A stretch of DNA of 61,020 nt, filler included, from Syncephalis fuscata S228 (Eukaryota > Fungi > Zoopagomycota), in the NCBI GenBank assembly GCA_025786725.1. It is 3 parts of 3 records of this genome, joined end to end, with 100 filler letters (N's around TTAATTAATTAA, not from the genome) between each part and the next. Parts side by side here need not be neighbours in the genome. Positions count along the whole stretch, not along the records: positions 28,087 to 55,192 come from JAHLTZ010000106.1; 2 more parts are not named here. One strand, 5' to 3'. Under the pieces are notes generated by a model, which saw only the letters and a list, made by a program, of their open reading frames with translations, did no database searches and was not told where the DNA came from. Of this stretch, positions 28,087-55,192 are shown in pieces. Each line of letters starts with the position of its first letter. The first letter of the stretch is position 1. The position numbers and the translations under genes were made by a program.

Positions 28087-30348
28087 GGCTCATCGCCCAT
28101 GCCTAGTCGACTAGCTACACCGTCGTCAAGACGTAATAGCGGTGAAGAGGAGCGTGATAATGAGGAAGGCATGGCAAATGATGCCAATGATGAAGAATGG
28201 GTTACAGTAAGCGGCAAATTCCACTTTGTCGATTTGGCTGGTTCTGAGCGATTAAAAAGAACAAATGCTGTTGGCGATCGAGCCAAAGAGGGCATCAGTA
28301 TTAATGCTGGTCTATCGGCACTTGGCAATGTTATCAGTGCATTGGGCGACTCATCACGCAAAGTAGCCCATATTCCGTATCGTGACTCAAAGTTAACTCG
28401 TTTATTACAAGATTCACTCGGTGGCAACAGTCAAACATTAATGATTGCTTGTGCATCGCCAGCAGCTGTCAATGTACTTGAAACTTTAGTAAGTAATATA
28501 AATACGTAGTTTATTAAATGACTGTCTAACAAGTACATTGATACTATGGTGCTATTTGTAGAATACATTGCAATACGCAAATCGAGCACGTAATATTAAA
28601 AATAAAATTTCACTCAACGAGGAGATGTCAACCGATATCGGATATTTACAGGCCCAAGTCACAAAACTACGTGCAGAACTTCGTGCATTAAAAATGGCGT
28701 CACCTACACCAGAAAGTAAGTATAATAATAAGTAAATTACACTGACATTAACAATAATTTAGACAACCGTGAATTAGTACGATCTGCTTCGCCAAATCGA
28801 CCTGCTTCGCCAAGTCCTGCTTCACCAACTGTACCCAGTATCTCTAGTCCATTGTCACCATATCGTTTCAGATCGTCATCTATTGGCAATGGCAATGGCA
28901 ATAATAACAGCAGTAATGGCGACTCAATGTCTACATTTGCTACTCGTCGTATTCAAGAGCTGGAAACTGAAGTAACACGTGTCACTGCCTCTTACCAGCA
29001 TCTTTTAATGCAATATGAAAACATTTGCCACAGTAATTCTGCTTTACAGCAGGCCACGGTTCAAAATGGAATTCGTAACAAAGTTAAAAAACGACACGTA
29101 AGATCTGATTCTTTAAGTTCAACATCCTACGCCAGTTCAGAACAATCGATCGATGCTACAGATATGGACGATGACGATGAAAGTATACTAGAAGAAGACG
29201 AAGAAGAGGAAGAGGAGGAAGAGGAGGAGGAAGAGGAAGAAGATACTGGTTTAAGCGAAAGTGAATATGGCGAAGAAACGGAAAGTGAAGCTGAAACAGC
29301 CACTAGTGTGGGTGATGACCTTGAACGTGAACATGATTCACAAAACGGCGATACTACTATTAATGGTAATGCCGCAACAGCAACAGTAGAAGATACAACA
29401 GACGATGAAAGTTATATGGCTATGACATCGTTTCAGCAACAGGTTGAACCGGTGATTGAGGAGTATGAAAAAGTAGTAGCTGGACTTGAAGAGCAATTGC
29501 GCGAGACTGAAGAAGCAATTCAACGCACAGGAGAAGAGTTGTTGATGTATAAGGAACGTGCACTTCAAGCCGATGAAGTACAGCGAGCCAATAATCAAGA
29601 GTTAATGGATCTACGAACACAGTTGCAACAACTGGAACAAGCACATATTCTATACCGAGAACAAGAGGCCGATGCTGAATGTGCACAGTCGGAGATTACT
29701 AGACTACAACGAACAGTACAAGATTTAGAAGCACAATTGGAAGAGGAACGTGAAGCTGCTGCTGTTGCTGTAGCTACTGCTGCTGTTGCCGCTGCTGCCA
29801 ATAGGGCCACACCTCATATACGCACACCAGAATTAAAGGCCGATCATTTTGCAGCCAATAGTCATAGTGGTCGTGCTACACCTATACCAATTCGTGCTAA
29901 ATCTGTAGCCAGTTATACTAAAGAGCTAGACCAAACGGATAATGAAGAGCAGCCGCGACAGCAGCCACCCACACCACCACAAATATTGCTAAACTCGTCG
30001 GATATTACACTTGCCGTCTCGAATGACGCCGAGACTAGCTACGAGCAAGAGAACGATGAAGATAACAAAAGTATCATTAGCAATAGTAGAAGTATACATA
30101 GTCATGGTATTAAAAGTAGAAGTGGTAGTAGTATGACACAACGACACGCCATTGAACACTATGGAAGTGCATGTGATTTTAAAGAAAATCCTACGGCCGC
30201 CGCTGTTCTCTACCGACTACGCGCCGATCTACGTGCCGCCGAACAACGAGCCAATCGGTTTACGTACATGAATATTTTATTACTTATTCTTTGTGCCTAC
30301 ACAGCTTATTGGGCCTATAGGATGAATTTGACATCACCCGTATTCTAA
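28087..30348 (+). CDS. Kinesin-4-like (KIF4/KIF21/KIF27-type) motor, 5' truncated, with acidic tract, coiled coil and C-terminal TM helix
   Basis: [43 protein letters not shown]|[14 protein letters not shown]; exons 28087-28488, 28562-28715, 28763-30348. Confidence 0.9.
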
Positions 30349-33387: not shown

Positions 33388-35892
33388 CTATTTGGCTGGT
33401 AGTCCACCCTCAAGTAAACGAGATAAAGCGTTGAGGTTGGGACAGCCATCGAGTACAATGTTGGATGAGCCATTAGTTGTTGACATGGTCTCTTCAAAGT
33501 GTTGTTCTAATTCACGAATATTGGCCTGTAAATCATTCAAATCCATAAGGTCCTGCTCTGAACCAAGTGTAGCACTAGTGGCACGGGATGAGTTTGTGCC
33601 TGTACTGCTATTACTGCCACCATAGCCTAGTGATGACTTGGACGCAATGGATGAAGCTGAAGTCAGCGTTCCATTGCTGTTGGTGCGTACTGGTCCACGT
33701 GGTGGATCTCCCGACTCAAGTTGGCGAATACGTTCGCGCAACTGGGCAATCTCTTCAACTTTACGACGTTGTACCTCTTCTGCTAATCGAACACGGCCGT
33801 TAACAAGACGTAAATCATCTTCCACACGTTTACGTGCATTCGTCTCGGTCCTTAGTCTTGTTTCAAGCTGTGTTACCGTCTTTTCATACTCTTCAATAAT
33901 CGGTTCAATTTCAGCAACGAATGCTGGATTATTTAAACGAGCAAGCGCTTCATCGCCCATGGATTCTTTGCCAAAGGAATCGGCCGCATGGTTGCCATTA
34001 GAAGAAGGTCCTCCATTGGCCATAACACCCATGACACGGCAGTGTTCATCGCGTAGATTGGATAGTTCAGCGGCCGTCTCTTCATATTTAACCAATAAAT
34101 GGCGATATGATTTATTAATACGATTCATTTCAGCTTCTGTCTTCTGTAGCCGACGAACAACGGCCGGCGGAAGACTATCAAGACCAATCGGGCCCTGTCC
34201 TGACGTTGGACTCATCGTATTGGGCGTAAGTGGCCGATGCTGTGCAGTTGGCGAGCTCATCGTGCTTCTTGGGCCTTGTTCATCATAATTATCAGATCCA
34301 CCACGTTCTTTAAGTGTTTTAACTTCTGAGCGCAATTTTACAACTTGCTGTTGCAGCCATGTAACATCATTTGACATCTCTTCATTTTTACTTGCAACAT
34401 TCTTGATATTTCGAGCTCGATTGGCGTATTTAAGCGTATTAAGTGTTTCAGCCATATTCGATGCAGCTGGCGACACACAAGCAATCATTAATGTTTGACT
34501 GTTACCACCGAGTGAATCTTGTAATAAACGAGTTAACTTTGAGTCACGATACGGAATGTGTGTAGCTTTTTTTGCTGAGTCGCCCAATGCACTGATAACA
34601 TTGCCAAGTGCCGATAGACCAGCATTAATACTGATGCCCTCTTTGGCTCGATCACCGCTGGCATTTGTTCTTTTTAATCGCTCAGAACCAGCCAAATCGA
34701 CAAAGTGGAATTTACTTGTAACAACCGTCCATTCACCGCCGCTATTATCTTCGGTGGCTGCACGGCGGTGCGGCCCCAATGGTGATGAGGCACGGCGTCC
34801 AACACGAGACTGTATACCCGATGGTGTACCCGACCGTGGAACGGCTAGCTTTGACTGGCCATTATTTCCATCACCTGATTGCGATCTTGTCGTAAAGTGA
34901 CGCTAAAAATAGCATGAGATCGTGATGACTTTTCATTCATGTCAGTCTGGCCCACTTGGCGGTGTTGCGAGCCTAGTTCCAATTGTCTAATAAATGCAGC
35001 AATTAATATTTGCTAGTATCGGTGTTTTAACATATATCCACAAACTACTTACTGCATTACATCATCCGTTGAGTGCACCTGTACTTCACGAATACCAGTC
35101 CAATAAATATTACCACGCGGATCTTCTCGAATTTGTACTTGCGCCCGCGCATTAGATTCCGAAAGGAGATCGATCAATTCTTCGTTATAAATTTCCAAAA
35201 ATGATACTCGTACTTGATATCGAGTATTACTACGCGATTGTTGCGCTTGATAGATTCGCTCGAATAGCTCCTGAATAGCACGTGGAATAATACCCACAGC
35301 ATCGTTGTTGTAGTCATGTGCGCATCCAGTGCCCATGGTGTGGGTCTTACCAGAGGATGTTTGGCCATAGGCCAATATAGTGGCATTATAGCCATCAAAG
35401 AACTTATCCAATAGAGGTGTAGCCAATTCCTCGTACACTTCAAGCTGAGTCGATTCAGGATCAAATACATAGTCATAAGAGAAGTTACGGGCCTCTGGCA
35501 CTACAGTGACAACACGGCGATGCTGATCCAGGCTAAGTACTTCGAATCCGCCATTTCGCTGTGCTAGCTCTATTTCGTTAAGTGGGCGAGTTCGTACAGC
35601 TAGAGTATTTTCGTGGCAAATAATAAATAGATACGTATTAATTAGTATGGATTTTGTGTATGCAAATGTTCAGGTGTGCATAAAACATTATATGTCTATA
35701 CTGGCAGTGCTACTTTCTCCTACTTCTCCTCTGTACAACCTGCCGTAGCTATTATCGCGTAGGCACTACCAAGTCTTTTGTGATGTCCAGCTATTATTCA
35801 CCTGCCACACTATACTTACCAACTTTAACGGAGACGCTATTCGAATCACCGGCGGCACTGCTCCCATTGGAACAAACACTATGGGCTGTCAT
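33388..35892 (-). CDS. Kinesin-4-like motor with short coiled-coil tail; apparent frameshift near 34880
   Basis: VKV|[64 protein letters not shown]. Confidence 0.9.
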
Positions 35893-38947: not shown

Positions 38948-41709
38948 TTAATTGGAATTTGCAACAGAATCTAACTCAGCCATACAAGTATCTTCCGACT
39001 AGATGTTCAGTTTAAATAAATCAAACGATTAGCTAATAGTGACAATTAAACAATACTATATCTTACCATTTGCTGTTCATCAGCAATACACAACGCCACG
39101 TAAAATGCTCTAGGTGAATCTCGCGGCATTGCATGGCCAATAGCAATATGGTGTTTTGCATACTCTGTATCCATACATCTGCTTTTAACCTCTAATACAG
39201 TTTGTGGCTCATCATCCCAGTCATTCAGCTGATTAGATAATTCGAAGCTGTTCTTTGCGGCAATTTTAATCGTTTTGTCATCTTCCGTTTTATATTTAAT
39301 TATAGTTGTTTGTTTTGGAGTAACATCACCAGTTGCCAATCTGGTGTGAACGTTCATTTGTATAGGAGTTACTCCAGGAAGAAGATAGCTTAGAAACATG
39401 CCATGACGACGATCCTCGTAAAATAGCGTAAATCTAATAAATTTCCGCTCGCCTTGTTTCAATTCTTCGCCTTTTCTAATATCATCTGGTATACCAGTGG
39501 AGAAAAAGTCGTTTAATTTCAAGGATATACTTGAGTGTTGATTATTTAAAACAACCGTTACTTTATAGGGTTGTGCAGTCGATGGTAAAGCTAAAAACAG
39601 CTGGTTATAATAACTATAAGCAATTATTTTAACTACTTACTTGCTGGAATTCTCGCCTCTTCATAGAATACCTATTAATTGCAATTAATACAGTGGGTAA
39701 GTGCAGTAGATTGATTATTTACCGCTGGATCGAATTCTTTTTTCAGCATTATTTTAAATAGACGATTAGGTTCCGAACTCAAATAAGTTATAAGCTGAAA
39801 ATTAACATCAGGCCTCAAGTTAATTCGTCGCTCCATTAGTCGTCCGTGGTCGTAAGAGTTTTCTGTAGTATTCTCTTGCTTGCCCACAATGCCCGAATAA
39901 GCAAAAAAGTAATCCAGTGTTTTTTCTAATTCCTCGTTTGAACTATTGCCACGGAAAGTAAACACCACAGCAGTAATAAACGAATCGTAAGTGCGCTTCA
40001 CGCGTAATAAGCAAAGATAAGGCGATTTAGCAACGGAAAGTGTAGGGGTAATAGCAAATAAATGCATAAATGACCAACTACTTTCTGATACTTTTTCGTG
40101 AAATATGCATTTTCCACTTGATGAAAGAACGCCACCACTGCAATTGCATTCAATTGAAATGGCGTTTTCATTGGCATGTTCAGGCATAAGCGGCTCAACT
40201 TCAATCTTTAAATCTCTTTCAATCTCCAATGCCAATATACCATGACCCTGCTTGTTGGATTTAATATAGCGATTAATAGTATTGCGAGCATCCTGCGAGA
40301 TGTCGCTATTAAAACATAATTGAGCAATGCTATTTGTTATTGGTGCTATGGTAACATACCTATTTTCACCTGTGGGTAGAAATAGTGGAACACCGTTAAA
40401 GTTTTTTGTAAACGCTTTTTCTAAACGAATATAAAATTCGGCATGCGATAAACGCTTAAATCTCACTGAAATCTTCAAGTCGAAATTATGCAAATGCCAC
40501 TGCGATGGACGACCACGCATAAACATGTGATGGCCCAAAATCTTTTCATGTGCGTGCAACAAAGCGTCCGTATATTCAGGGAAGTTTGCATTCTTGACGG
40601 CAAGAAGCGTACTACACACCTTACGCAACGTATGATCATGTGCAGTTACTAGAAAATCCATAGCTAAAAAAATACGGTAGCCCCACAGTAGTGGCGGTGC
40701 ATTTTGTTCACTATGCTGTAGTTCATAGACGACCGTGCCACTAGTACGCCCAAATGGTGTCTTATTTTTAAATATATACTTAGACTGCGCCCTATAACCA
40801 ATAAAATTGTGTCCTCTTGTCTTTAATTTACCATTTCTAACGATCGAACTGCAGTTGGTAAGTGTTAAATTTTCACAATCGTTGTGAATAAACACATTCA
40901 TACTGCTAGTTAATCCAAATTTATCATCATCTGTTTTAGTTTTTTCAGACTCGTTTCCTATAAAACATTAGTAAACCAACAAGCTCATTTGTACTTTAAA
41001 ACTTACCTGCTGTATCCCATGTGACATTCTCAAAGCTGTATTATTAAACAACATTATTAGCCAAATGACATTGGTCGTTGCTGTTCGCTTACTAGTTAGT
41101 GGTTAGGAAAAATGGTCGATTCATAATAGCATCCTTGTTAGCTGGTATTATCTCAACCTCCATTATGCCATTGGCAACGTCGGTTAAACTGACATTAACG
41201 GTGAATTTCGTGTCATCATCGCCAAGATTCCAGGTACGGATCATCATAGTGCCAGAAGGCTGGAATTGCGGCACAACATCTTTCAAGTAGTGTTCTTTAA
41301 GCAAACTAGTTGAAATATCCTGACCAGGATATGTTTCCACAAGGTTAAGCATTACTTTACACGCACCACCCAATTGAATATTCCAAGCAAGTAGCAAGTA
41401 GATGTTATGAGTGGTGGCGGGTGGCCGATTAAACGCTGTTATGCTATAGACACAGCATCCATCAATATGCGTTCCCAATGCATGGGCAATAAACCGAAAC
41501 GTTCTACTCTGCTCGGGCAATATACTGAATGCTTGTGGCTCGGAACACTGGCCAGCATGACAGTAGCGAGCAAAATTCTGTAGTTTCAATCTAGGATGTC
41601 TATTGCTAATATTAACCTGTAAGGTTGTACGTGTTTCTTGCCAAATAAAATAAGCAGCTCGACCGAGTAGTTCGGCCGCTTGAACTGCTCCTCCAATAGG
41701 ATCGGACAT
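38948..41709 (-). CDS. About 800-aa protein of four tandem actinoporin/cytolysin-like beta-sandwich domains (6 exons)
   Basis: In-frame GT-AG splicing links ORFs 41092-41709, 39675-40901 and 39046-39522 through small exons at about 41007-41035 and 39641-39671. Domains 1, 2 and 4 start with a V-x-I/L-x-N...L motif; domain 1 aligns by eye with actinoporins. Confidence 0.7.
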
Positions 41710-43535: not shown

Positions 43536-46037
43536 ATGGATCCATACTACGACAAGCAGCCTTACCCGTCGCATTCGGGTAACTCGCAGCCAGCATTTCA
43601 AAGCTCTCATTCGGTTACAACTACATCTCATCAAGAGTACTATACCACGCAGCAGCACCAGCATCAACAGCAGCAGCAGCAGCAACATTACGAAGGTGGC
43701 TCTGGAACACATAGTCCAGAACATCTATACGATAATGCTCAAGCCCCTCCTCCTAATGCACGTCGTTACCAAAACTACCAGGACGGTCGTCGTCGATCCA
43801 TTCGTCGTATTGAATTGACGAGCGGTAACTTGGTAGTTGATTGTCCAGTGCCTGATCGTATTCTGACTAATGCTGTCTATCGTGATGGCGAAGAATTTAC
43901 GCATATGCGTTATACTGCCTGTACTTCGGATCCTAATGACTTTATTCGTGAACGCTATACATTGCGTCCAGTATTATATGGTCGTGAAACTGAAATATTT
44001 GTTGTTATGACCATGTACAACGAAGATGACATTCTTTTCTGCCGCACCTTCAACTCTGTAATGAAGAATGTTGCCCATCTTTGCTCGCGTAATCGTTCAC
44101 GCATGTGGGGCCAAGAAGGCTGGAAAAAGGTCGTTGTGTGCATTGTATCTGATGGTCGTACTAAGATTAATCCTCGTACCTTGAAGGTCATTGGTGCTAT
44201 CGGTGCTTATCAAGATGGTATTGCAAAAAATTCATTCAACGGCAAGGAAGTTACAGCTCATTTATTTGAATATACAACCCAAGTGTCGATGGACTCGGAA
44301 ATGAAGTTACGTACGGCTAACGACGGCGTCGTTCCAGTACAGATTCTTTTCTGTCTAAAGGAACGTAACGCCAAGAAGATCAACTCTCACCGCTGGTTCT
44401 TTAATGCATTTGGCCAAGTTCTTAAGCCAAACGTGTGTATTTTACTTGACGTCGGTACCAAGCCATCCGGTACCTCAATCTACCACTTATGGAAAGCATT
44501 TGATCGCAGTCCATCTGTTGGTGGTGCCTGTGGTGAAATCTGTGCCGATTTGGGTAAAGGTGGTGTTTTACTGCTTAATCCGCTTGTTGCTACACAGAAT
44601 TTTGAATATAAGATGTCAAACATTCTTGATAAGCCACTTGAGTCGGTCTTTGGCTACATTTCCGTATTGCCTGGTGCCTTTTCGGCCTATCGCTTTGCAG
44701 CTCTGCAGAATGTAGCACCTGATCGTGGACCGCTTAACTCTTACTTCAAGGGTGAGACCATGCACGGCGCCAATGCCACTGGTGGCATTTTTGAAGCCAA
44801 TATGTACTTGGCTGAGGATCGTATTCTGTGCTTTGAGCTGGTTGCAAAGCCAAACAGTGCATGGTTGCTTAAGTACGTTAAATCCGCCAAAGCATGGACT
44901 GATGTGCCGGATAGTATTGGCGAGTTTATTTCTCAACGTCGTCGTTGGTTGAACGGCTCCTTCTTTGCCGCTTTCTACGCTATCTTCAACTTTTTCCAAA
45001 TTTATCGTTCAGGTCATAACATTCTACGCAAATTGCTTCTTACCGTCGAGTTTGTTTACAACACCATTAATATGTTATTCAGTTGGTTCTCATTAGCTAA
45101 TTTCTATCTTGCATTCTATTTCCTTACTGTTGCCTACACCAAGTCCAATGTCAATTATCAAGAAGATAGCGATCCATTCTTTGGTCGTGGCGATATTGTG
45201 TTTACTTTGATGCGTGAGCTCTACATATTGCTTATTGTCTTGATTTTTGTCGCTTCACTGGGTAATCGCCCACAAGGTTCACGTGCGCTTTATTTGTTTG
45301 CTATCGCTGCCTTTTCGCTTATTATGATTCTTATGCTCTACGTTGCCGGCTTTTCCGTCTATTTGCAAGCCCCTCGTAACGCAAAGGATTGGAGTACCGT
45401 TGGTCATAAGATTGCTACCAGCTCAACATTTCGCAATCTTGTTATTTCGCTAGCATCTACCTATGGCCTTTACCTTATATGTTCGATTCTGCACTTTGAA
45501 CCATGGCACATGATTACTTCATTCATTCAATATCTACTCTTGTTGCCGGCCTTTGTCAACATTCTTATGGTCTACGCTTTCTGCAACACCCACGATGTGT
45601 CATGGGGTACTAAAGGTGATAACTCGGCTAGCAATGACTTGGGTCACGCCAAAGCAAGTAAAGAAGACGGTAAAGAAGTGGCAGAAGTGTCTTTACCCAC
45701 TGAAAAGGCCGACATTAACGCTGCATACGATAAGCTTGTACAAGAGCTTGCCGTACGTCCCAAGGACGTCAAAGAGAAGCGAGATGCATCGACTAAGCGT
45801 GAAGATTACTACAAACTATTCCGTACCAATCTTGTATTGGCCTGGATGTTTAGTAATGCATTGCTTGTCGTCATCTTTACAAGCGAAATATTCAGAGGTT
45901 GGATTAACCAGCGTGTTGGTGCCGATAGTACCTTTAATCCGTACTTGGCCTTTATCTTCTGGTCGGTCGCCGGTTTGTCGGCTTTCCGATTTGTTGGTAG
46001 CGTTACTTATTTGGTTCTTCGTCTAATCTTTGGATAA
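43536..46037 (+). CDS. Chitin synthase, division 1 (class I/II-like), intronless CDS
   Basis: [77 protein letters not shown]. Confidence 0.97.
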
Positions 46038-46343: not shown

Positions 46344-48981
46344 CAATAGTGAGTGTTTTTTGGGTAAAACTGTTTTATTATAGGAAAAATTAGAAAATGC
46401 ATTGTTATTAAATTTTACCATAATAAAAATCACTTTTAAATTTATTAAATTTATTAATTAATAAAATCACTTTGTTTGCCCCACACTTTGTTTTCTGTAA
46501 TGCCTTTATCAAAGAATAGTTACTCTTTAATGGCATGTTTTCTTGTTTATAGCTGTTTCATTACTAGTTGTATCTATTTTTACATAACATATTTTTGTAT
46601 TGTATTTTTTAGCTGTATTTACCACAAGTATATCGTTGGAAGTCTTTTAACAAATAAAATAGGATTGGCGTTGATGTTGATATTGCTACAATTAACTAAA
46701 TTACGTAAATAAACAAAGTTTTAAATTAAAATTGTTGCATTTATTATGCTTAACTTTTTCCCATCAGGGATTTTTAACTTTGTAACTTTTATTATTCAAC
46801 AATATTATAAATACGTAATAATGTTACTCAAATAATAAAGATGCATTTTTATAATTTAATTCATTTTAGTTTATATCAAAATCCGTACAATTACAGTTTT
46901 TTGTTATAAATCTGCTAATTTGAGCTATTGTTATAAGTTAAAGTCATTTGATACTAATAATATATATTTTATTAAATTGATATTAAAATTTTAATTAAGT
47001 CACTGTTTCTATTTCTTTTTCTCCTTTGGTTACTTGGTCAATGCTACACTATTTATTACTATTGTTATAGCAATTTCATTTTTTTATCGAACCAAAAGCA
47101 GACCAAGCTTTGTAATAAATTTAGTAATAGATTTAATAGTATCATTACCAGAGTTATATGAACAACCATTAAAATGCTTAATATTGCACTAGGTAATTTT
47201 TACTAGGCCAGTTTTCTGCTTTCTGGCAGTCAAAACAAACTGAAATTTGTTGCTGGAAGAGTCTTCATGAGGACAGCTAAACTGTAATCTTGTTGAATTA
47301 CTATTTTTTTCTTTTAAAATTGCAATTGCTAACAAGCTTAACTCGTAAACAGCGGCCCTCAGTTCTTCAATACTGTTAAGTATAGCTTTTTTAAATAGTT
47401 CAATTGACATTTGGTAGATTGTTCAAAACGGCGTATTTTCTAATTTCCCCTTTAAAAAACAGTTTATTTTAATTCTGAATACGAATAAGCTAAGACGGCC
47501 AATAAAATATTTCATACAATCTAAAATGTGCAGTCTAATAATTCTACCCCATTTAATATTTGGCGTATATTCTACAACGTCATTTATATAAAGAGCATAA
47601 TTGATAATGCAATAACATTCGTTACCAAATCATTATATTTTATATGATAGCGTAGCTTCAAGAATAATATTATTACGGCTCTGCTTTTAAAAATCGTAAC
47701 TTAGATGATCAAGCAACGTATTGCCCCAATTCTATCTTATGCTGTTGACTTTTGATACCTACTGAAATTTACCTTACCATTCAGAATACGATGTGTTGGT
47801 TGATATTGTTTTGATAATAAGCGTATTTGTTATTTGTAATCAATTATTACAACTCAACTATAGCCAATGATAAAACTTAACGCTTTCTATTATTTCTTTA
47901 TTAAAATATTATTATTAATTTATTTGAATAATAGTATAGTTATGACATTGAAATAACAACAATAAGGCCATTGTAAAAATGTAATATTCTTATTTCTAAT
48001 AAATATGATTGCAGTAAAATATTTTGAAATATCAATAAAACACTATTTTAAAAATTTAAGCATAAAATTATTGCACCAATACTAGCAAAGTATGCTGCAG
48101 TATTAAAAATGATTTTAATGAAATGTATGTTAAAAACAATAGTATTAATTTACTTAGTAAAGCGCTAATAATACTGTGTAACCTTACGTAAAACCAAGTA
48201 AACTGTATGATATTTTGCACAAGTATGCACATAGCATATAGGTAACTATTGGCAAAATATATCGTTATTGTAGTGCGTAATGTTATAATAATTACGATAA
48301 TACACTAGTAAATGTATAAAAATAACAGTTTCTAGTCATTTATGACTTATATAACTAAAATACAAAAAAATGATTGCCGAATTCGGGTTCTCCGTGCTTA
48401 GTTATACGAATTGGCATAAGATTTATAGCAACAATTTTAATTTAAAACTTTGTTTATTTACGTAATTTAGTTAATTGTAGCAATATCAACATCAACGCCA
48501 ATCCTATTTTATTTGTTAAAAGACTTCCAACGATATACTTGTGGTAAATACAGCTAAAAAATACAATACAAAATATGTTATGTAAAAATAGATACAACTA
48601 GTAATGAAACAGCTATAAACAAGAAAACATGCCATTAAAGAGTAACTATTCTTTGATAAAGGCATTACAGAAAACAAAGTGTGGGGCAAACAAAGTGATT
48701 TTATTAATTAATAAATTTAATAAATTTAAAAGTGATTTTTATTATGGTAAAATTTAATAACAATGCATTTTTTAATTTTTCCTATAATAAAACAGTTTTA
48801 CCCAAAATCGATATTAAACTTTTCCAAAAATACCGGTTGTATTTTTTCAAAATCTGAAAACTAATAGGCAACTTTAAGTATGAAATTACATAATGTTACA
48901 TGCCATAAATTTGTATACAATTTTTTTCTGTATTTCTCAATCTTCCTTTTTTTCGGGCGCCAAAACGCTCACTCGATTCTG
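46344..48981. mobile_element. Non-autonomous element with about 380-bp near-perfect inverted repeats (46358-46738 / 48428-48807)
   Basis: The arms are reverse complements almost base for base; outer ends TA|CAATAGTGAGTG ... CTCACTCGATTCTG|TA suggest a TA duplication; no transposase ORF inside. Confidence 0.8.
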
Positions 48982-49060
48982 TAGACTAAAATAAAATAAT
49001 TTTAACAAGCTAGTTGCTGTTTATATAAAAACGAAATTAAATGAAAACTACATACTAGAT

Positions 49061-50812
49061 TTACAACTCTTTGTAAAGATCCTTGTGCTGAGCCTTAATC
49101 ATATCGGCGCCCTTCTCGCCAATCATGTAGACTGCGTTTTGGATTCGGCAGTCAGGAATGATAGGCATGATAGAAGCATCTATCACACGGAGATTCTTGA
49201 TGCCGTGGACGCGGAGCTGGGGATCGACGACACCTTGGTCAATGTTCTTGGACAGGCGAGCGGTGCCGCAAGGGTGGAATGCAGTTTGGCTTCGATCCAA
49301 AACGGCCCTCTTCATTTCCTCATCCGAATCGAGAGGCATATCCCAAGGGTACTCACCGATGACGATATCCTTAAAGCCTTCACCATGGAGGAGAAGATCG
49401 TAGGCCCATCTGACACCCTCACGCATGGCAATGATGTCCAGGTCATTGGCGAAGAAGTTCAGGTTGATGTTGGGCTGCACAAGAGGATCAGCACTGTTGA
49501 GTGTGACCTCACCGCCCTCGGACACCGGGCGAACCAGATCAACAACAACAGACGTGTAGCATCCTTCCTTAGGGGTAGGAAAATGCCATTGGAATGCGCT
49601 GCCGAACATGCAGACAAAGTCGAGTTCGAAGTGTGGCTGTCCCTTAGGAGAGAAAGGATCTAGACCGCCGTTATTGGCTTTGGCCCTACTGTAGACAGGA
49701 TCCTGGTTCAGGTTCTTATCAATGCGGGTGAAACCAACCATGTCCAGAAGGCCAGATCCCACAGGGCCTTCCTTGTTGCTGTGATATGCGGACATGGCAG
49801 CATCCTTGCGGGGACCGGGGCGCAGGAGGACGTCGTCCATACCAAAGCCGTCCTTGACACGCAGGACGAAGGGGACGGCGGGGTGATCGAGCAAGTGCTG
49901 GCCCACATGGCGCGAGTCGACAATCACATCAAGACCGTGCTTGGCCAACTCGGCGGCGGGTCCGACACCACTGAGCATCAGCAGCTTGGGGGTTTCAAAA
50001 ACGCCCTGGGAGAGAATGACGTCACGGGTGGCGTAGAAGCTGAGTTCGGCGCCGGTGGAAGCGATCACAGTCACACCAGTGCAAGCGCGGGTGGCCTTAT
50101 CGATGATTAAACACTTGCTGTGAACGGAAGAGAGAATTGTGATATTGGGCCTGTTCTTGACGAAGAGATAGCTACCTGAGCGCTGGCCATTGTGGATTGT
50201 GTCTGCACAGTGAGTGAGGCCGATCATCTTGCCGTCGTAGATGTTTTCCGAAATCGGCACGCCCTTGGAGACCCAGGCCTTTCTAAGAGCATCACGAAAG
50301 GGTTGCATCTCTGGAATCAGGGCAGCGTGAGATATCGGGATTGGTCCACCGGTACCAAGCTTATTAAATTCTGGACCATAGAGCTTTGGATTATCGTAGT
50401 AGGTTGCGCTCTTGCGGAAGTAAGGAAGAAGGTTATCCCAGGTCCATTCATTGCCACCAAACTCCCCCCAGTCGTCAAAGGTTGGTTTGCAGCCAGGGAT
50501 CCAGGTGAAGTAGTTGAGGCTGGAGCTGCCGCCGAGGATCTTGCCGCGGGTGTTGGGCTTCTCGATGCGCTCGTAATCGTCGCGCTTGATCATTGTGGTC
50601 TTGTAGGCCCAGTCGTATTTGCTGCTGCGGAGGTCCATGGCCATGGAAGGGGTGGTAATCTCCTCGATCTCGCTAGGATTGTCGACGCCAGCCTCGACAA
50701 TCAGGACACTGACATTGGGATTTTCAGCAAGACGGCCGGCAACGGTGTTACCAGCAGTGCCACCTCCTACGATGATGAAGTCGAAATGAGCTCCGTCTGT
50801 AGCTGCAGCCAT
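49061..50812 (-). CDS. GMC oxidoreductase (FAD), intronless, GC-rich
   Basis: GGGTAG ADP-binding fold, RGKILGGSSSLN, TPKLLMLSGVG, VGQHLLDHP, TAFHPCGT, VVDPQLRVHGIKNLRVIDASIMP; first ATG at 50812. Confidence 0.96.
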   Translation of the reverse strand: MAAATDGAHFDFIIVGGGTAGNTVAGRLAENPNVSVLIVEAGVDNPSEIEEITTPSMAMDLRSSKYDWAYKTTMIKRDDYERIEKPNTRGKILGGSSSLNYFTWIPGCKPTFDDWGEFGGNEWTWDNLLPYFRKSATYYDNPKLYGPEFNKLGTGGPIPISHAALIPEMQPFRDALRKAWVSKGVPISENIYDGKMIGLTHCADTIHNGQRSGSYLFVKNRPNITILSSVHSKCLIIDKATRACTGVTVIASTGAELSFYATRDVILSQGVFETPKLLMLSGVGPAAELAKHGLDVIVDSRHVGQHLLDHPAVPFVLRVKDGFGMDDVLLRPGPRKDAAMSAYHSNKEGPVGSGLLDMVGFTRIDKNLNQDPVYSRAKANNGGLDPFSPKGQPHFELDFVCMFGSAFQWHFPTPKEGCYTSVVVDLVRPVSEGGEVTLNSADPLVQPNINLNFFANDLDIIAMREGVRWAYDLLLHGEGFKDIVIGEYPWDMPLDSDEEMKRAVLDRSQTAFHPCGTARLSKNIDQGVVDPQLRVHGIKNLRVIDASIMPIIPDCRIQNAVYMIGEKGADMIKAQHKDLYKEL

Positions 50813-50961
50813 TGTGGAAGAAATCTGATAGGAATCGATATCTGTATCTTTTAGAGTTTGTAACAGGAAAAGTAAAACAAATGTGTTCTTGGATTGAGAA
50901 AGCACGATGTAACAGTGGAAAGCAAGTACGGAAAAGGTTGGGAGAACTGAAGAACTGAAAG

Positions 50962-50971
50962 TTTTATATAA
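50962..50971 (-). promoter_or_regulatory. Putative TATA box of the GMC gene
   Basis: TTATATAAAA on the minus strand about 150 nt upstream of the ATG, followed by a pyrimidine-rich leader. Confidence 0.45.
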
Positions 50972-51013
50972 CAGCTACCTTTACAGGAGTAAAGAGGGAG
51001 AAGTATTTGGCGA

Positions 51014-51127
51014 TAAGGTATAATTTATGTTTTAATTAAGGTATAATTTATGTTTTAATTAAGGTATGATCTATGTTTTAATTAACGTATAATTTATGTT
51101 TCAAATAAGGTATAATTTATGTTTTAA
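51014..51127. repeat. Five tandem copies of a 23-bp unit TAAGGTATAATTTATGTTTTAAT
   Basis: Copies start at 51014, 51037, 51060, 51083 and 51106. Confidence 0.92.
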
Positions 51128-51919
51128 AAATATATATTTGACGTTTTAGAACAAATGCTAGAACTCGTACAATGAAAATATTTTTTTGTGAGTAAAGTAA
51201 AGAGAGAGAAAATAAAGGACGTCCATGCGTGCGCGTATGAAGTGGATTAAGCGGTAGCATTTTTCTTTCATTAATTTTATAAGACCTTCTCGTTCACTTG
51301 TTTCTTTTCTTTATCTTTGTGGGCAAATGAATTTTTTAGTTTATTAAAGCTATACGACACATTCCACGCCAACTAACATATTGAAGATACATCACACCGT
51401 ACAATGAATCGCCACTCGACTACGGCAACGATAGATTCTATTACTGTCGACAGCTTCGCACACATGATACCGCTAGGCCGGTGAACCTACTCAGCTATCA
51501 GTATTTAAGTGCGCACTAACTAGCAGTATTAATAAAATGGGAGCTACTGCATTTTGACTCCTACATTTTTATTTATCTATTTCATCACTATAGCGTGTAT
51601 AATATTACATCCAACATTAATTGATTCATGTGTAATTAGCAATACAATAATGTGATTAATTAGTTATTTTTATTATTGCTTTAACATCTATACATTGTCA
51701 TTATGATATTAATTGTTCAAATACCATTTATTTAGTCAGATTAGCTATAGAAAAGTGGCTGTTTAATAAACAACATTTATACTAATTATATTAATACTGA
51801 TCTTACATCACAAATATGCCCAGAATGCAACAGTAGAATATTAGAAAAACAGAAGAAATCGTTTAGATGCAATAGCCCATACTGTACATAAATTCAATAA
51901 CAACAAACGTGGAATGACA

Positions 51920-52140
51920 TGGAATTGCAATCATGTGGCTTCTATTAACATTCAATCAATCTTTCTACACATGGCCAGTAACAACAATGATCGGCCTCAA
52001 ATGTCTTAAAAAATCAATAGTATGTTATGTTATTTAAATAAATCAATTTATTAACAGTATTTTAATAGAAATCAATGTAGCTATCTTGCGTATAACAACG
52101 AAATGACTCTAATTGGAACAAATTTTACTTTGGAGCTCAA
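51920..52140. repeat. Dispersed repeat family B, copy 2 (upstream of catalase)
   Basis: Colinear with about 9850-10070. Confidence 0.8.
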
Positions 52141-52265
52141 AATGTGCGAGTCAAAGTATAATTTAGCCAATAAAACTTTACCTTATTTTATAGTAGCTCG
52201 GTCGTGTATCCACCTTCTTAACTTGTTATTACTTAACTTTGCTAACAATCTTACATAACCTCATA

Positions 52266-54328
52266 ATGGCTCACAACGTTCCAACTATCCTTGCAACCCC
52301 TCAAACCAATGTCCTCACTACAAGTAATGGTATGTTAGATCTTCCGTGTCTGTCTTGTATATAGTATGCTTTCCTGTGCTAGTCATCGCTTTGCAATGCA
52401 CATTTAATTTTAAAAAGCTATTTGGCATTTCTCGCAGCCAAAGACTCACCTATAGTTGTTTCTTGTAGGTAATCCTGTGGACGACAACCAAAACTCATTG
52501 ACCGCAGGTGAATTTGGTCCCATTTTGCTACAGGACTTCCATCTCATCGACAAGATCACTCACTTTGATCGCGAGCGCATCCCCGAGCGTGTTGTTCATG
52601 CCAAGGGCGCAGGAGCTCACGGACACTTTGGTAAGTTATAAAAATGGAGATTGAGACTGGAAAAAATATTTTCTGGAACTGATACATTTTATTTTCGGTT
52701 TGTTGTATGTTTGGAAATTTGCCCTGGTTTTAATTGGCCATAATAATCATGCTCGTTAACTACAGAGGTGACTGCGAATCTGTCTCAACTCACCAGCGCC
52801 AAGTTCCTTCAAACGCCTGGCACCAAGACTCCAGTCTTTACGCGCTTCTCCACTGTCGGAGGTGAGAGAGGAACCAGTGACTCGCTTCGTGACGTTCGTG
52901 GCTTCGCAGTCAAGTTTTACACTAAGGAGGGCAACTGGGACATGGTTGGAATCAATACACCAGTCTTTTGGATGTAAGTAATAATCCCAAGCCGTTACAA
53001 CAAAAGCATATTGATGTTATACACGATACTCTAACGCTCACGGACCTTCTTACATAGCCGAGACCCCCTCAAGTTTCCCGATCTTAACCACTCCCAGAAG
53101 CGTCATCCTCAAACTAACTTGAAAGATGCTGATATGTTTTGGGACTTTTTGTCACTCACTCCCGAGTCACTTCATCAGGTCACAATCATATTCTCCAACC
53201 GTGGTACCCCCTACTCGCATCGCCACATGCATGGATTCGCGACCCACACGTTCAGGCTCGTCAACGCCCAGGGTGTTGCTCACTATGTCAAATGGCACTT
53301 CAAGACTGATCAGGGCATCAAGAATCATACTAGCGAGGAGGCAGCCAAACTCGATGGCTCCGACCCAGACAGCAACACTAAGGACTTGTTTAATGCCATC
53401 GAAAAGGGTGATTTCCCTTCGTGGAGCGTCTATCTCCAGTAAGTTTCTGGTTTATTCTTGCTCATCCATCGCATTGTCACTGTTGTGGCCATTAGCATTT
53501 GATTTTAATTATGCTTTTTTTTATTATTTCTTGTAACATTACTTTAGAGTCATGAAGGAGGAAGATGCCGCAAACTACAAATGGAACATTTTTGGTAAGG
53601 TCTTGTATGACAAAAAAGAATTCGATCATAATAGCGCAAAAAACTTTAATTCAAAAACTAACTACAATTCATTACTTTGAATGACAGATGACACCAAGAT
53701 CTGGCCTCATGCTGACTATCCTCTTCAAAAAATCGGCAAGTTAACTTTGGACCGTAATCCAAGCAACTACTTTGCCGAGGTTGAACAGGCTGCTTTCTCT
53801 CCTTCGTCTATGGTGCCTGGTATTGACGTTTCAAATGACAGGATTTTTCAGGCTCGTTTGTTCTCGTATCCCGACACTGAACGCCACCGTCTCGGCTCCA
53901 ACTTCCAACAGTTACCCATTAATCAACCATACCGCGCCAAGATTAGCAACTACCAACGTGATGGCCAGGGAACCTACTCTGAGAACTTTGGAGCTCATCC
54001 CAATTATGAGCCCCAGAGTCAGGACCCCAATGGTCCTCAACAGCAGTCGCAGGATATCCGTGCCAAGTTTGCATCATTTAACTTAAGCGGAAAGACTGGT
54101 CGCTATCCTTACCGCAAGTTGGAGGATGACTTCATACAGCCACGCAACTTGTACCACCTGTTGCAGGGCAAGGAGCAGGATGATTTGATCAATAATATTG
54201 TTGGACATATTAAGCATGTTAAAAATCCCGAGATTATCAAGCGCCAGATTGCATTGTTCGCCAAAGCTGATCCCGAGTGGGGTCGTCGTGTTGAGGAGGG
54301 AGTTAAGACAGCTGGTAAGAAGCTTTAA
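52266..54328 (+). CDS. Small-subunit monofunctional heme catalase (clade 3 type), 6 exons, PTS1-like -KKL end
   Basis: [59 protein letters not shown] (proximal Tyr). Confidence 0.96.
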
Positions 54329-55192
54329 GGCCAGGACATGGGGCCGATGCGCCATTAATTAAGTCATGATGGCGCTTGTACATAACATTAAAATAAATTT
54401 CCAATGAAATGGAAGGCTCCTGGAATGATTATTAAGTGGTAGTGTTTCTTCTTTTTTATAACACTATTTTTTCTTCATTTGGTATTCCGAGCTGGATGTA
54501 ACTTCTTGCGCGTCCCATTCCTCTCCATCCCTTCAACCGTATGCAACTGCCTTTTCCTTTTGTCAAAAAGCACTATCTGCTTGCAAAAAGTAGTTGGAGT
54601 ATTGGTCAGACAACCATTTCTCTAAATCAATTTTTCTTCTTATAAATTTCAATTGAATGGATCGAATAGACTCGAGATCTCATTGATAAATATTGCCTGA
54701 AACCGTTGATTAATCAAAGTTTATCAACATTGACGTAATTGGTAATGTAATGGTTTTATGTAAGTTGTTATGGTAGATGGAATGGTAGATGGCAAATTAT
54801 GTATAAAATAATGAGTAGTTTTGATGGCCAAATGGCTTAACCTTTTAATACACATCATTGTAAATTCACCCATTAACTGAATAGTTTACAATTTACGTCG
54901 TTGTTTTCTTTTCTCTTTCTACACTTGACAGCATTTATATATTGGATATACATTCTATTGTCAACTATTTCACAATAACCTGGTAGATAATAATAAACAA
55001 CTATTGCTGTTTTAAGCCATTTGTCTTTTGGCCCAATGTTGCTCTAATGTATATATCCAAAGTTAGAGCATTAATATTGTTATTGGCATTAACGTTATTA
55101 TAACATATAACATAAAGGCTTTTTAAAAAGAGACTAGGCATAATACATATTAGCAATATAAAGAATATTTAATAAATAAAATAGAAACTATC

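Follow-up and report, generated by a model that had tools for sequence, protein, structure and literature searches.

The 61,020-nt stretch of Syncephalis fuscata S228 DNA analysed here (the window, filler included) carries a head-to-head pair of genes for a predicted formate oxidase (FOX) and an altered catalase, which we consider, with a probability of about three in four, to be a formate-oxidation cassette that moves horizontally and reached this mycoparasite recently from an Umbelopsis-like host lineage. A preliminary description of the same DNA had proposed an acquired pair of an H2O2-producing oxidase of the GMC family and its catalase, a view that stands, with the oxidase now assigned by homology to the formate oxidase family. 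Both gene models were confirmed (Table 1), and several of the earlier observations hold: an ATG-to-ATG gap of about 1.45 kb (1453 nt), an intronless oxidase beside an intron-rich catalase, a coding style unlike that of the surroundings (GC3 is 0.64 in FOX and 0.52-0.61 in the large catalase exons vs 0.30-0.43 in other genes of the same piece) and an adjoining TIR element.

Table 1. Features of the cassette locus, in window coordinates
Feature	Position	Strand	Remarks
Native Syncephalis chitin synthase (CHS), host-genome anchor	43536..46037	+	87% to Thamnocephalis, ~63% to Mucoromycota
Non-autonomous TIR element	46358..48807	.	between CHS and cassette
DNA homologous to Umbelopsis cassette loci	48947..54596	.	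putative transferred block, later inserts inside
Predicted FOX gene, GMC family	49061..50812	-	583 aa, one ORF, no intron
Conserved TATA-like box, FOX side	50961..50972	-	common to Umbelopsis and Mortierella copies
23-bp x 5 AT-rich tandem array	51014..51127	.	TRF score 193; specific to window copy
Conserved TATA-like box, catalase side	51275..51285	+	now ~930 nt displaced from catalase
Solo-LTR-like insert, 930 nt	51318..52247	.	TGT...ACA ends; 18 nt upstream of catalase ATG
Catalase gene	52266-54328	+	6 exons (1503 nt in all) and 5 GT-AG introns
Catalase exon 1	52266..52329	+	ATG at 52266; run X1 shows splicing of intron 1 (joint 52328-52468)
Catalase exon 2	52469..52630	+	contains distal His (human H75)
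Catalase exon 3	52766..52973	+	S114, V116, D128 kept; P129V, N148I, F154W (human numbering)
Catalase exon 4	53058..53438	+	F164L, I165N, S217T
Catalase exon 5	53548..53594	+	-
Catalase exon 6	53688..54328	+	retains proximal Tyr (Y358); Y370F; C-terminal KKL

Judged by its sequence, the GMC protein is a formate oxidase. It has both the N and C domains of the family, its best PDB matches (3q9t/5zu2/5zu3) score ~1058 bits while the next family reaches 242 bits, and it is 76.8% identical over the full length to the FOX of A. oryzae RIB40, whose residues R87, S94, L97, N98, Y99, T101, F510, H511, R554 and Q556 are all kept in a residue map. F510, H511 and Arg554 (F512, H513 and R556 in the window protein) we take to be the active site, replacing the usual GMC His/Asn. 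R87 and S94, which are R89 and S96 here, are required for 8-formyl-FAD formation in formate oxidase (PMC11236828), an enzyme that produces H2O2 (PMC6563469). FOX identity and formate-type residues thus point to formate, instead of the alcohol-type substrate suggested earlier, and the other role then envisaged, oxidative attack, is unlikely because the protein opens with its FAD-binding motif (starting at residue 10-15, without a hydrophobic leader) and no signal peptide was seen when the N-terminus was inspected by eye, with no predictor. The A. oryzae enzyme (AoFOx; PDB 3Q9T, 5ZU2, 5ZU3) is of the same size, likewise has no signal peptide and shares 77% identity, but the window FOX resides in a zoopagalean mycoparasite and is head-to-head with a catalase, whereas no catalase lies within 10 kb of the A. 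bertholletiae member of the AoFOx cluster.

The partner descends from the catalase family and has an active site that departs from the canonical one. Its 500 aa hold the Pfam Catalase and Catalase-rel domains, without the large-subunit C-terminal domain, and 1si8 and bovine/human catalase come first among the PDB matches (exons were searched singly, their lengths summed and one split codon read; relatives were gathered with the public Umbelopsis homolog P0268 as query). As in the clade 3 small-subunit monofunctional heme catalases (human, bovine and Enterococcus KatA type), H75, S114, V116, D128 and Y358 are intact, but the cassette clade differs from these in being fixed for N148I, F154W, P129V, F164L, I165N, S217T, V299D and Y370F. 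Exon 3, which aligns ungapped to human 1f4j 88-154 and HPII 143-207, carries three of these changes: P129V (52894-52896), N148I (52951-52953), which turns the distal catalytic Asn (human N148, HPII N201) into Ile, and F154W (52969-52971), which leaves F153 as the one unchanged member of the gate-valve pair. Roles in catalase have been described for the conserved catalytic Asn and the gate-valve Phe pair (PMC9687031). Since the cassette catalases are all altered (Asn148 to Ile, channel remodelled) whereas their paralogs are not, the changes in the distal pocket and substrate channel suggest a specialisation for formate. An AlphaFold model of the Umbelopsis homolog is of low confidence (mean pLDDT 51).

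Kinship with Umbelopsis reaches well beyond the coding sequence. By blastn, positions 48947-51012 and 52269-54449 are 91.5-92% identical to U. nana and to a second locus (L001), homology to another (L004) extends to 54596, the five introns are common to the window and U. nana catalases (86-95% identical) and the UTRs match too. FOX has a dS of 0.19 to U. nana, and the catalase exons have dS values of 0.11-0.30. Outside the window, the head-to-head pair occurs in U. nana, Umbelopsis PMI_123, Mortierella AM989, Dissophora and Mucor hiemalis as well as on Umbelopsis-like metagenome and Logan contigs, its flanks mostly differing between copies; a catalase adjoins FOX at 15 of 21 informative loci. 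The cassette catalases (of the window, Umbelopsis, Mortierellaceae and Mucor hiemalis) group with 100% support in one clade, which is nested among Mortierellaceae paralogs. In separate phylogenies, species-tree topologies were rejected for both genes, AU tests excluding both a Mucoromycota FOX group that leaves out the window copy (p=0.0007) and a grouping of the window catalase with the native catalases of Syncephalis (p=6e-6). The window FOX branch is under purifying selection (35 synonymous and 8 nonsynonymous changes, omega ~0.07). Its GC-to-AT changes (37:14) are no proof of amelioration, since Umbelopsis branches drift likewise. No paper describing a FOX-catalase cluster, and no published account of the genomic context of formate oxidase, was found in the literature searched.

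The cassette sits at the end of a 27-kb contig, on which the chitin synthase shares a 90% cluster with that of S. plumigaleata; there and in Thamnocephalis, CHS is followed by an unrelated 1000-aa gene, which corresponds to an empty site. The TIR element has ~380-nt arms (46358-46738 and 48428-48807) that are 99.5% identical, with no target-site duplication and no long ORF inside. As a carrier of the cassette it is unsupported because it lies on one side only, lacks a target-site duplication and has no matching TIRs flanking the Umbelopsis or Mortierella copies. The window kinesin and one close to the PMI_123 copy of Umbelopsis share only 41% identity, which we take as coincidence, and an Rfam comparison gave no match. 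Run X1 (a putative RNA run) contains FOX with 5 SNPs in 1985 nt, exact pieces of the catalase and one contig with intron 1 spliced.

Could the locus be an artefact in which the TIR element marks the point where Syncephalis DNA was fused to the cassette of a culture host, an Umbelopsis-like fungus not yet sequenced? Such an assembly chimera or contamination would fit the long perfect inverted repeats without target-site duplication at the junction (which no X1 contig spans), the small contig and the fact that Syncephalis-type mycoparasites are usually grown on a host (PMC6784888). No mention of the S. fuscata culture host turned up in the literature searched. We nevertheless regard it as unlikely. 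Among known Umbelopsis copies, none exceeds 92-94% identity to the window cassette; the family of the promoter insert is abundant in X1 but was seen in none of the Umbelopsis loci and runs examined; homology stops sharply on both sides, ~150 nt or less from the 3' UTRs, into DNA of 25-30% GC like the rest of the contig, with no further host sequence; and an X1 contig crosses the right boundary without mismatch. The X1 word share is 0.41 vs 0.31 from the listed cassette pieces, an excess that would roughly correspond to the CHS tail (0.09). Slightly less credible still is a parasite acting as go-between, from a Mortierellaceae host through Syncephalis to Umbelopsis (or among hosts), so that the window would not be simply a terminal recipient. 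The AU test does not reject a sister position of the window copy to the Umbelopsis copies as a whole (p=0.44 for FOX, 0.14 for catalase), the window FOX branch is long in synonymous changes (35 vs 10-12), and the Umbelopsis copies occupy three different loci with dS of 0.17-0.28 between them, Mortierella AM989 and U. nana being separated by a dS of only 0.30. However, in the best trees the window copy falls among those of Umbelopsis, no other Syncephalis copy is present among the best 120 FOX matches or their listed clusters, and the window promoter is the most degraded among the cassette promoters compared, which fits recipient status. There is very little room for the earlier proposal of two donors united at this locus for alcohol oxidation or oxidative attack: one gene is intronless and the other intron-rich, the catalase stems from a Mortierellaceae paralog family and FOX relatives are ascomycete-wide, but genes, introns, UTRs and promoter pieces are all ~92% identical to one Umbelopsis locus, the co-linear Umbelopsis loci refute an assembly at this site, and the formate-type residues and missing signal peptide speak against either role. 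The two-donor idea may apply to the deeper origin in Mortierellaceae. Least probable of all is vertical descent from a zygomycete ancestor with many losses, for which one can invoke the presence of FOX in several Mucoromycota lineages, but which is refuted by a cross-phylum dS of 0.19 with alignable introns, when CHS is saturated even within Syncephalis (pS 0.77 vs S. plumigaleata), and conflicts with the AU rejections for both genes.

A different alternative concerns function rather than origin. The catalase might be a dedicated formate/small-donor peroxidase using the H2O2 of FOX, which would make the pair a two-step formate pathway instead of a make-and-detoxify module; we see this as a possibility, albeit a minority one. 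It would account for the replacement of the catalytic Asn and one gate-valve Phe in 12/12 cassette-clade sequences vs 0/25 scorable paralogs, and would agree with the established ability of formic acid to donate two electrons to compound I (PMC9687031). Moreover, cassette carriers keep an ordinary catalase elsewhere in the genome (in S. fuscata, a native 484-aa protein on another contig), and catalases adjoining FOX elsewhere have P129V and I165N in some cases and N148I in others. On the other hand, catalatic turnover may persist, since His75, Ser114, Val116, Asp128 and Tyr358 are intact. N148I also occurs in 3/88 other catalases (whose neighbourhood was not seen), and one catalase adjoining FOX (L015) retains both N148 and P129. 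Convergence of the changes across lineages is favoured by the best trees, but not significantly (AU p=0.18 and 0.06), so that the shared changes are not proven independent.

Under the favoured scenario of a transferred cassette, an intracellular FOX (an 8-formyl-FAD GMC enzyme) would convert formate and O2 into CO2 and H2O2, which the catalase would either clear by dismutation or spend on oxidising a second formate, with the same net outcome (2 HCOOH + O2 -> 2 CO2 + 2 H2O). The pair would have been assembled in Mortierellaceae, where a duplicate of the family-wide 500-aa catalase became a FOX neighbour and then fixed its distal-pocket and main-channel changes, before the two genes travelled together to Umbelopsis and Mucor hiemalis and, in a recent step, from an Umbelopsis-like mould into S. 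fuscata, beside chitin synthase, where both genes appear to be under purifying selection while their shared promoter decays. The two activities, the adaptation of the catalase to formate, the direction of transfer and its route through parasite–host contact are our inferences. Partnerships between an H2O2-releasing GMC flavin oxidase and catalase are familiar from methylotrophic yeasts (alcohol oxidase) and Aspergillus niger (glucose oxidase), but the cassette would differ by using formate, by its head-to-head genes, by its mobility as a unit and by the modified active site of its catalase. Gene transfer in mycoparasitism also has a precedent (Parasitella-Absidia), and a patchy distribution, synteny kept inside, variable flanks, low dS and transposon neighbours are shared with horizontally transferred fungal metabolic clusters. 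Unlike in reported transfers, we would have here a two-gene primary-metabolism module moving, with introns intact, from Mucoromycota to a haustorial parasite of the Zoopagomycota.

This has several implications. Zygomycete transfers reported so far are mostly from bacteria (PMC10386755). Here an intron-containing block of two genes would recently have crossed phyla, out of the type of fungus that is parasitised and into a haustorial mycoparasite, so that gene flow mediated by parasites among early-diverging fungi can be tested directly. As for formate oxidase, a well-studied biocatalyst, its catalase neighbour in 15/21 informative loci points to a role in formate disposal. The cassette catalases, a natural conserved clade without the distal Asn, offer a ready test of (i) the role of this residue and (ii) the way catalases deal with formate, an inhibitor of these enzymes as well as a peroxidatic substrate. 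More speculatively, we may be dealing with an undescribed two-enzyme formate module, in which the loss of Asn148 and a remodelled channel turned a catalase into a formate peroxidase or an enzyme that tolerates formate; the pairing would have arisen at least twice in fungi and protists, and its zygomycete version would cross phyla via mycoparasite–host contact, with Syncephalis as recipient and possibly carrier.

The promoter shared by the two genes has its own history. Repeats had been noted there, and the 23-bp array is indeed present, but it is lineage-specific and, being absent from every homologous promoter, was rejected as a conserved regulatory element; a bacterial promoter scan gave a chance-level score and is not relevant to the locus. 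Conserved promoter blocks are deleted in the window copy, and both TATA-like boxes are present but split by the LTR-like insert and deletions. Because this insert parts the catalase from its TATA-like box and conserved blocks are gone, the co-regulation proposed earlier is doubtful for the window copy (both genes are present in X1, where expression levels are not comparable). The insert, which had escaped the preliminary description, makes up most of the intergenic gap and is not in Umbelopsis cassette copies. No full-length parent element was seen, but TG...CA ends, a 5-nt target duplication (ATCTT at 51313-51317 and 52248-52252) and a multi-copy family are as in a solo LTR, this family being diverged and of high depth in X1, with none in the Umbelopsis-like runs X2 and X3.

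The GMC enzyme of the window is, judged from its sequence, a formate oxidase (FOX). It matches the Aspergillus oryzae structures 3q9t, 5zu2 and 5zu3 with about 1058 bits (242 for the next GMC family), is 76.8% identical to the RIB40 formate oxidase and retains all of R87, S94, Y99, F510, H511, R554 and Q556 (A. oryzae numbering), of which R87 and S94 are needed for the 8-formyl-FAD cofactor (PMC11236828). Formate oxidase turns formate and O2 into H2O2 (PMC6563469). Given this match and the retained residues, the alcohol-type substrate proposed in the preliminary description no longer fits, nor does the proposed role in oxidative attack, since the FAD-binding motif begins no more than 15 residues after the Met (by eye), which argues against a secreted attack enzyme. 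What had been reported of the layout stands: the FOX and catalase genes lie head to head with ATGs 1453 nt (about 1.45 kb) apart, one without introns and the other intron-rich (exons adding up to 500 codons plus stop), a TIR element and promoter repeats are close by, and both genes differ in style from the remaining ones, with a GC3 of 0.64 for FOX and 0.52-0.61 for the catalase, whose exons were compared one by one, versus 0.30-0.43.

Features of the FOX-catalase gene pair and its surroundings (window positions)
Feature	Position	Strand	Remarks
Chitin synthase	43536-46037		87% identity with Thamnocephalis, ~63% with Mucoromycota
TIR element	46358-48807		~380-nt near-perfect arms
FOX (GMC) gene	49061-50812	-	583 aa, intronless
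23-bp x 5 array	51014-51127		tandem repeat
Solo-LTR-like insert	51318-52247		930 nt, TGT...ACA ends, flanking ATCTT duplicate
Catalase gene	52266-54328	+	six exons, five GT-AG introns

This gene pair (hereafter cassette) is a conserved, mobile unit. Among the matches listed, the nearest FOX proteins are those of Umbelopsis, Mortierella AM989, Dissophora and Mucor hiemalis, and each such locus inspected has a head-to-head catalase, so that the closest GMC homologues do adjoin a catalase of the same kind, these catalases forming a 100% clade inside Mortierellaceae-wide 500-aa paralogs. A catalase lies beside FOX at 15 of 21 distinct loci with enough flank (13 divergent, 2 tandem) and was not found there at the other six (Leptodontidium, Mortierella antarctica, Aspergillus bertholletiae and three metagenome loci); in Entomortierella lignicola the two genes have adjacent locus tags. 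Flanking genes vary among cassette loci, except that those of U. nana and an Umbelopsis-like contig (L001) are alike. On this contig, a DDE_3 transposase fragment (L001:520-822) lies immediately past the catalase, and a 1138-aa gene 4 kb from the Dissophora globulifera cassette (L008:15492-19367), which matches the Cas12f1-like TnpB zinc ribbon (PF07282), is possibly a Fanzor-type element. The Mucor hiemalis cassette (L009:6869-21140) has CobW and urease genes nearby; its short introns and GC3 of 0.40 make it look older or ameliorated. Two further loci (L015:636-4195 and L016), in which FOX is head-to-head with an intronless catalase that groups with a Balamuthia (amoeba) catalase (99% support), probably represent an independent pairing in a protist.

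That the pair was acquired, as first suspected, is supported by topology tests run separately for the two genes. The window FOX falls among Umbelopsis copies, and a constraint keeping Mucoromycota FOX together with the window excluded is rejected (AU p=0.0007), as is one placing the window catalase with native Syncephalis catalases (AU p=6e-6), the S. fuscata native enzyme (484 aa) being encoded on a separate 541-kb contig. The idea of different donors and local assembly is not upheld, since both genes match U. nana (91.5-92% DNA identity over 48947-51012 and 52269-54449) and the five catalase introns are at the same positions, with 86-95% identity. Synonymous divergence (dS) to U. nana is 0.19 for FOX and 0.11-0.30 for the catalase exons (0.30 between Mortierella AM989 and U. 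nana), while the chitin synthase is saturated versus S. plumigaleata (pS 0.77). A topology that puts the window genes outside, as sister to the whole set of Umbelopsis copies, is not rejected (AU p=0.44 for FOX, 0.14 for catalase). In the simplest history, the pair would have formed in Mortierellaceae, passed to Umbelopsis and Mucor, and then to S. fuscata, the direction of this last step being favoured, not proven. In U. nana (L036:9176-9258) and two related runs, 41-42 nt are duplicated in tandem where the catalase begins; this duplication, a useful marker of the donor lineage, is absent from the window and Umbelopsis PMI_123.

On the window FOX branch, 35 changes are synonymous and 8 nonsynonymous, for an omega of about 0.07. 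The insert, which to judge from its ends and duplicate has a solo-LTR signature, stops 18 nt upstream of the catalase ATG, 3' of a conserved TATA-like box, at a site where ATCTT occurs once in Umbelopsis. Blocks kept across four Umbelopsis promoters are deleted from the window promoter, the 23-bp array is found in the window copy only, and FOX/catalase co-regulation may be partly lost in Syncephalis. In X1, a sequencing run dated 2017 and guessed to be RNA, diverged kin of segments of the insert are very abundant, whereas in X2 and X3, two Umbelopsis-like runs, the insert is missing; catalase pieces are exact, FOX shows 5 differences in 1985 nt, a contig has catalase intron 1 removed by splicing, and a contig extends beyond the right limit of Umbelopsis homology with zero mismatch. 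Together, this argues for a cassette that is resident in the parasite genome and somewhat transcribed. The abundant repeat kin and the clean passage of the right boundary make an assembly chimera improbable, a small chance being left to it because X1 contigs leave the TIR junction unspanned and the TIR element has no target-site duplication. The second FOX allele seen in X1 departs from the window at 49442, 49628, 50059, 50272 and 50582, two of the five differences altering amino acids toward the Umbelopsis-like state, and represents another strain, allele or copy.

Most likely, FOX oxidises formate inside the cell, yielding CO2 and H2O2, while its partner catalase, which would be tuned for work in formate, clears this H2O2. 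The formate may come from oxalate decarboxylation, methanol/formaldehyde oxidation, sterol demethylation or soil acids. Besides the cassette enzyme, carriers retain a catalase of the ordinary type, in keeping with a dedicated role of the former. Cassette-clade catalases (human catalase numbering) retain H75, S114, V116, D128 and Y358 and have Leu or Val at F164, with P129V, N148I, F154W, I165N, S217T, V299D and Y370F fixed; in the alignment, the usual residue occupies 129, 148, 154, 165 and 217 in 23/23 paralogs and 16/16 canonical catalases. Of these positions, 148 normally holds the conserved catalytic Asn and 154 forms the gate valve together with F153; compound I is reducible by formic acid (PMC9687031). 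It is possible, though less likely, that the partner acts mainly as a formate peroxidase, which would leave the net reaction unchanged. Distant Dikarya-like FOX-neighbour catalases have Asn at 165 in six loci and P129V in 4/4 readable, and retain N148 wherever readable; a yeast-like one has N148I, F164L, S217T and Y370F. Both separate from the cassette clade in the best trees, a common origin being unrejected (p=0.18 and 0.06). The L015 catalase retains N148 and P129. N148I occurs in 3/88 other catalases. Ile is found at the distal Asn position in catalases of Dipsacomyces (P0371; additionally P129T, F164L and S217T), Coemansia RSA 2603 (P0385) and Cunninghamella echinulata (P0363). The two enzyme families were already known, as was cluster transfer in fungi; the FOX-catalase cassette, its zygomycete spread and the Asn-less catalase clade are not described in the literature searched, which covered few subscription journals.

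Syncephalis are Zoopagomycota mycoparasites, usually cultured on a mould host (PMC6784888). The window chitin synthase is in one cluster with S. plumigaleata. In this species and Thamnocephalis, a conserved but unrelated gene of roughly 1000 aa lies 3' of the chitin synthase (L035:13160-16306 and L012:13102-16113, respectively; C-termini 51% identical); it has no Pfam match and was not found in the window piece carrying the cassette. Two inverted kinesin genes (28087-30348, + strand; 33388-35501, - strand) share a 269-nt motor-domain stretch with 90% DNA identity (about 83% aa), which suggests local duplication or gene conversion. Three ORFs at 39046-41709 (- strand), without match in Pfam and NCBIfam, are probably one Syncephalis-specific gene, two of the three matching portions of one and the same S. 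plumigaleata gene of 822 aa (65-68% DNA identity).
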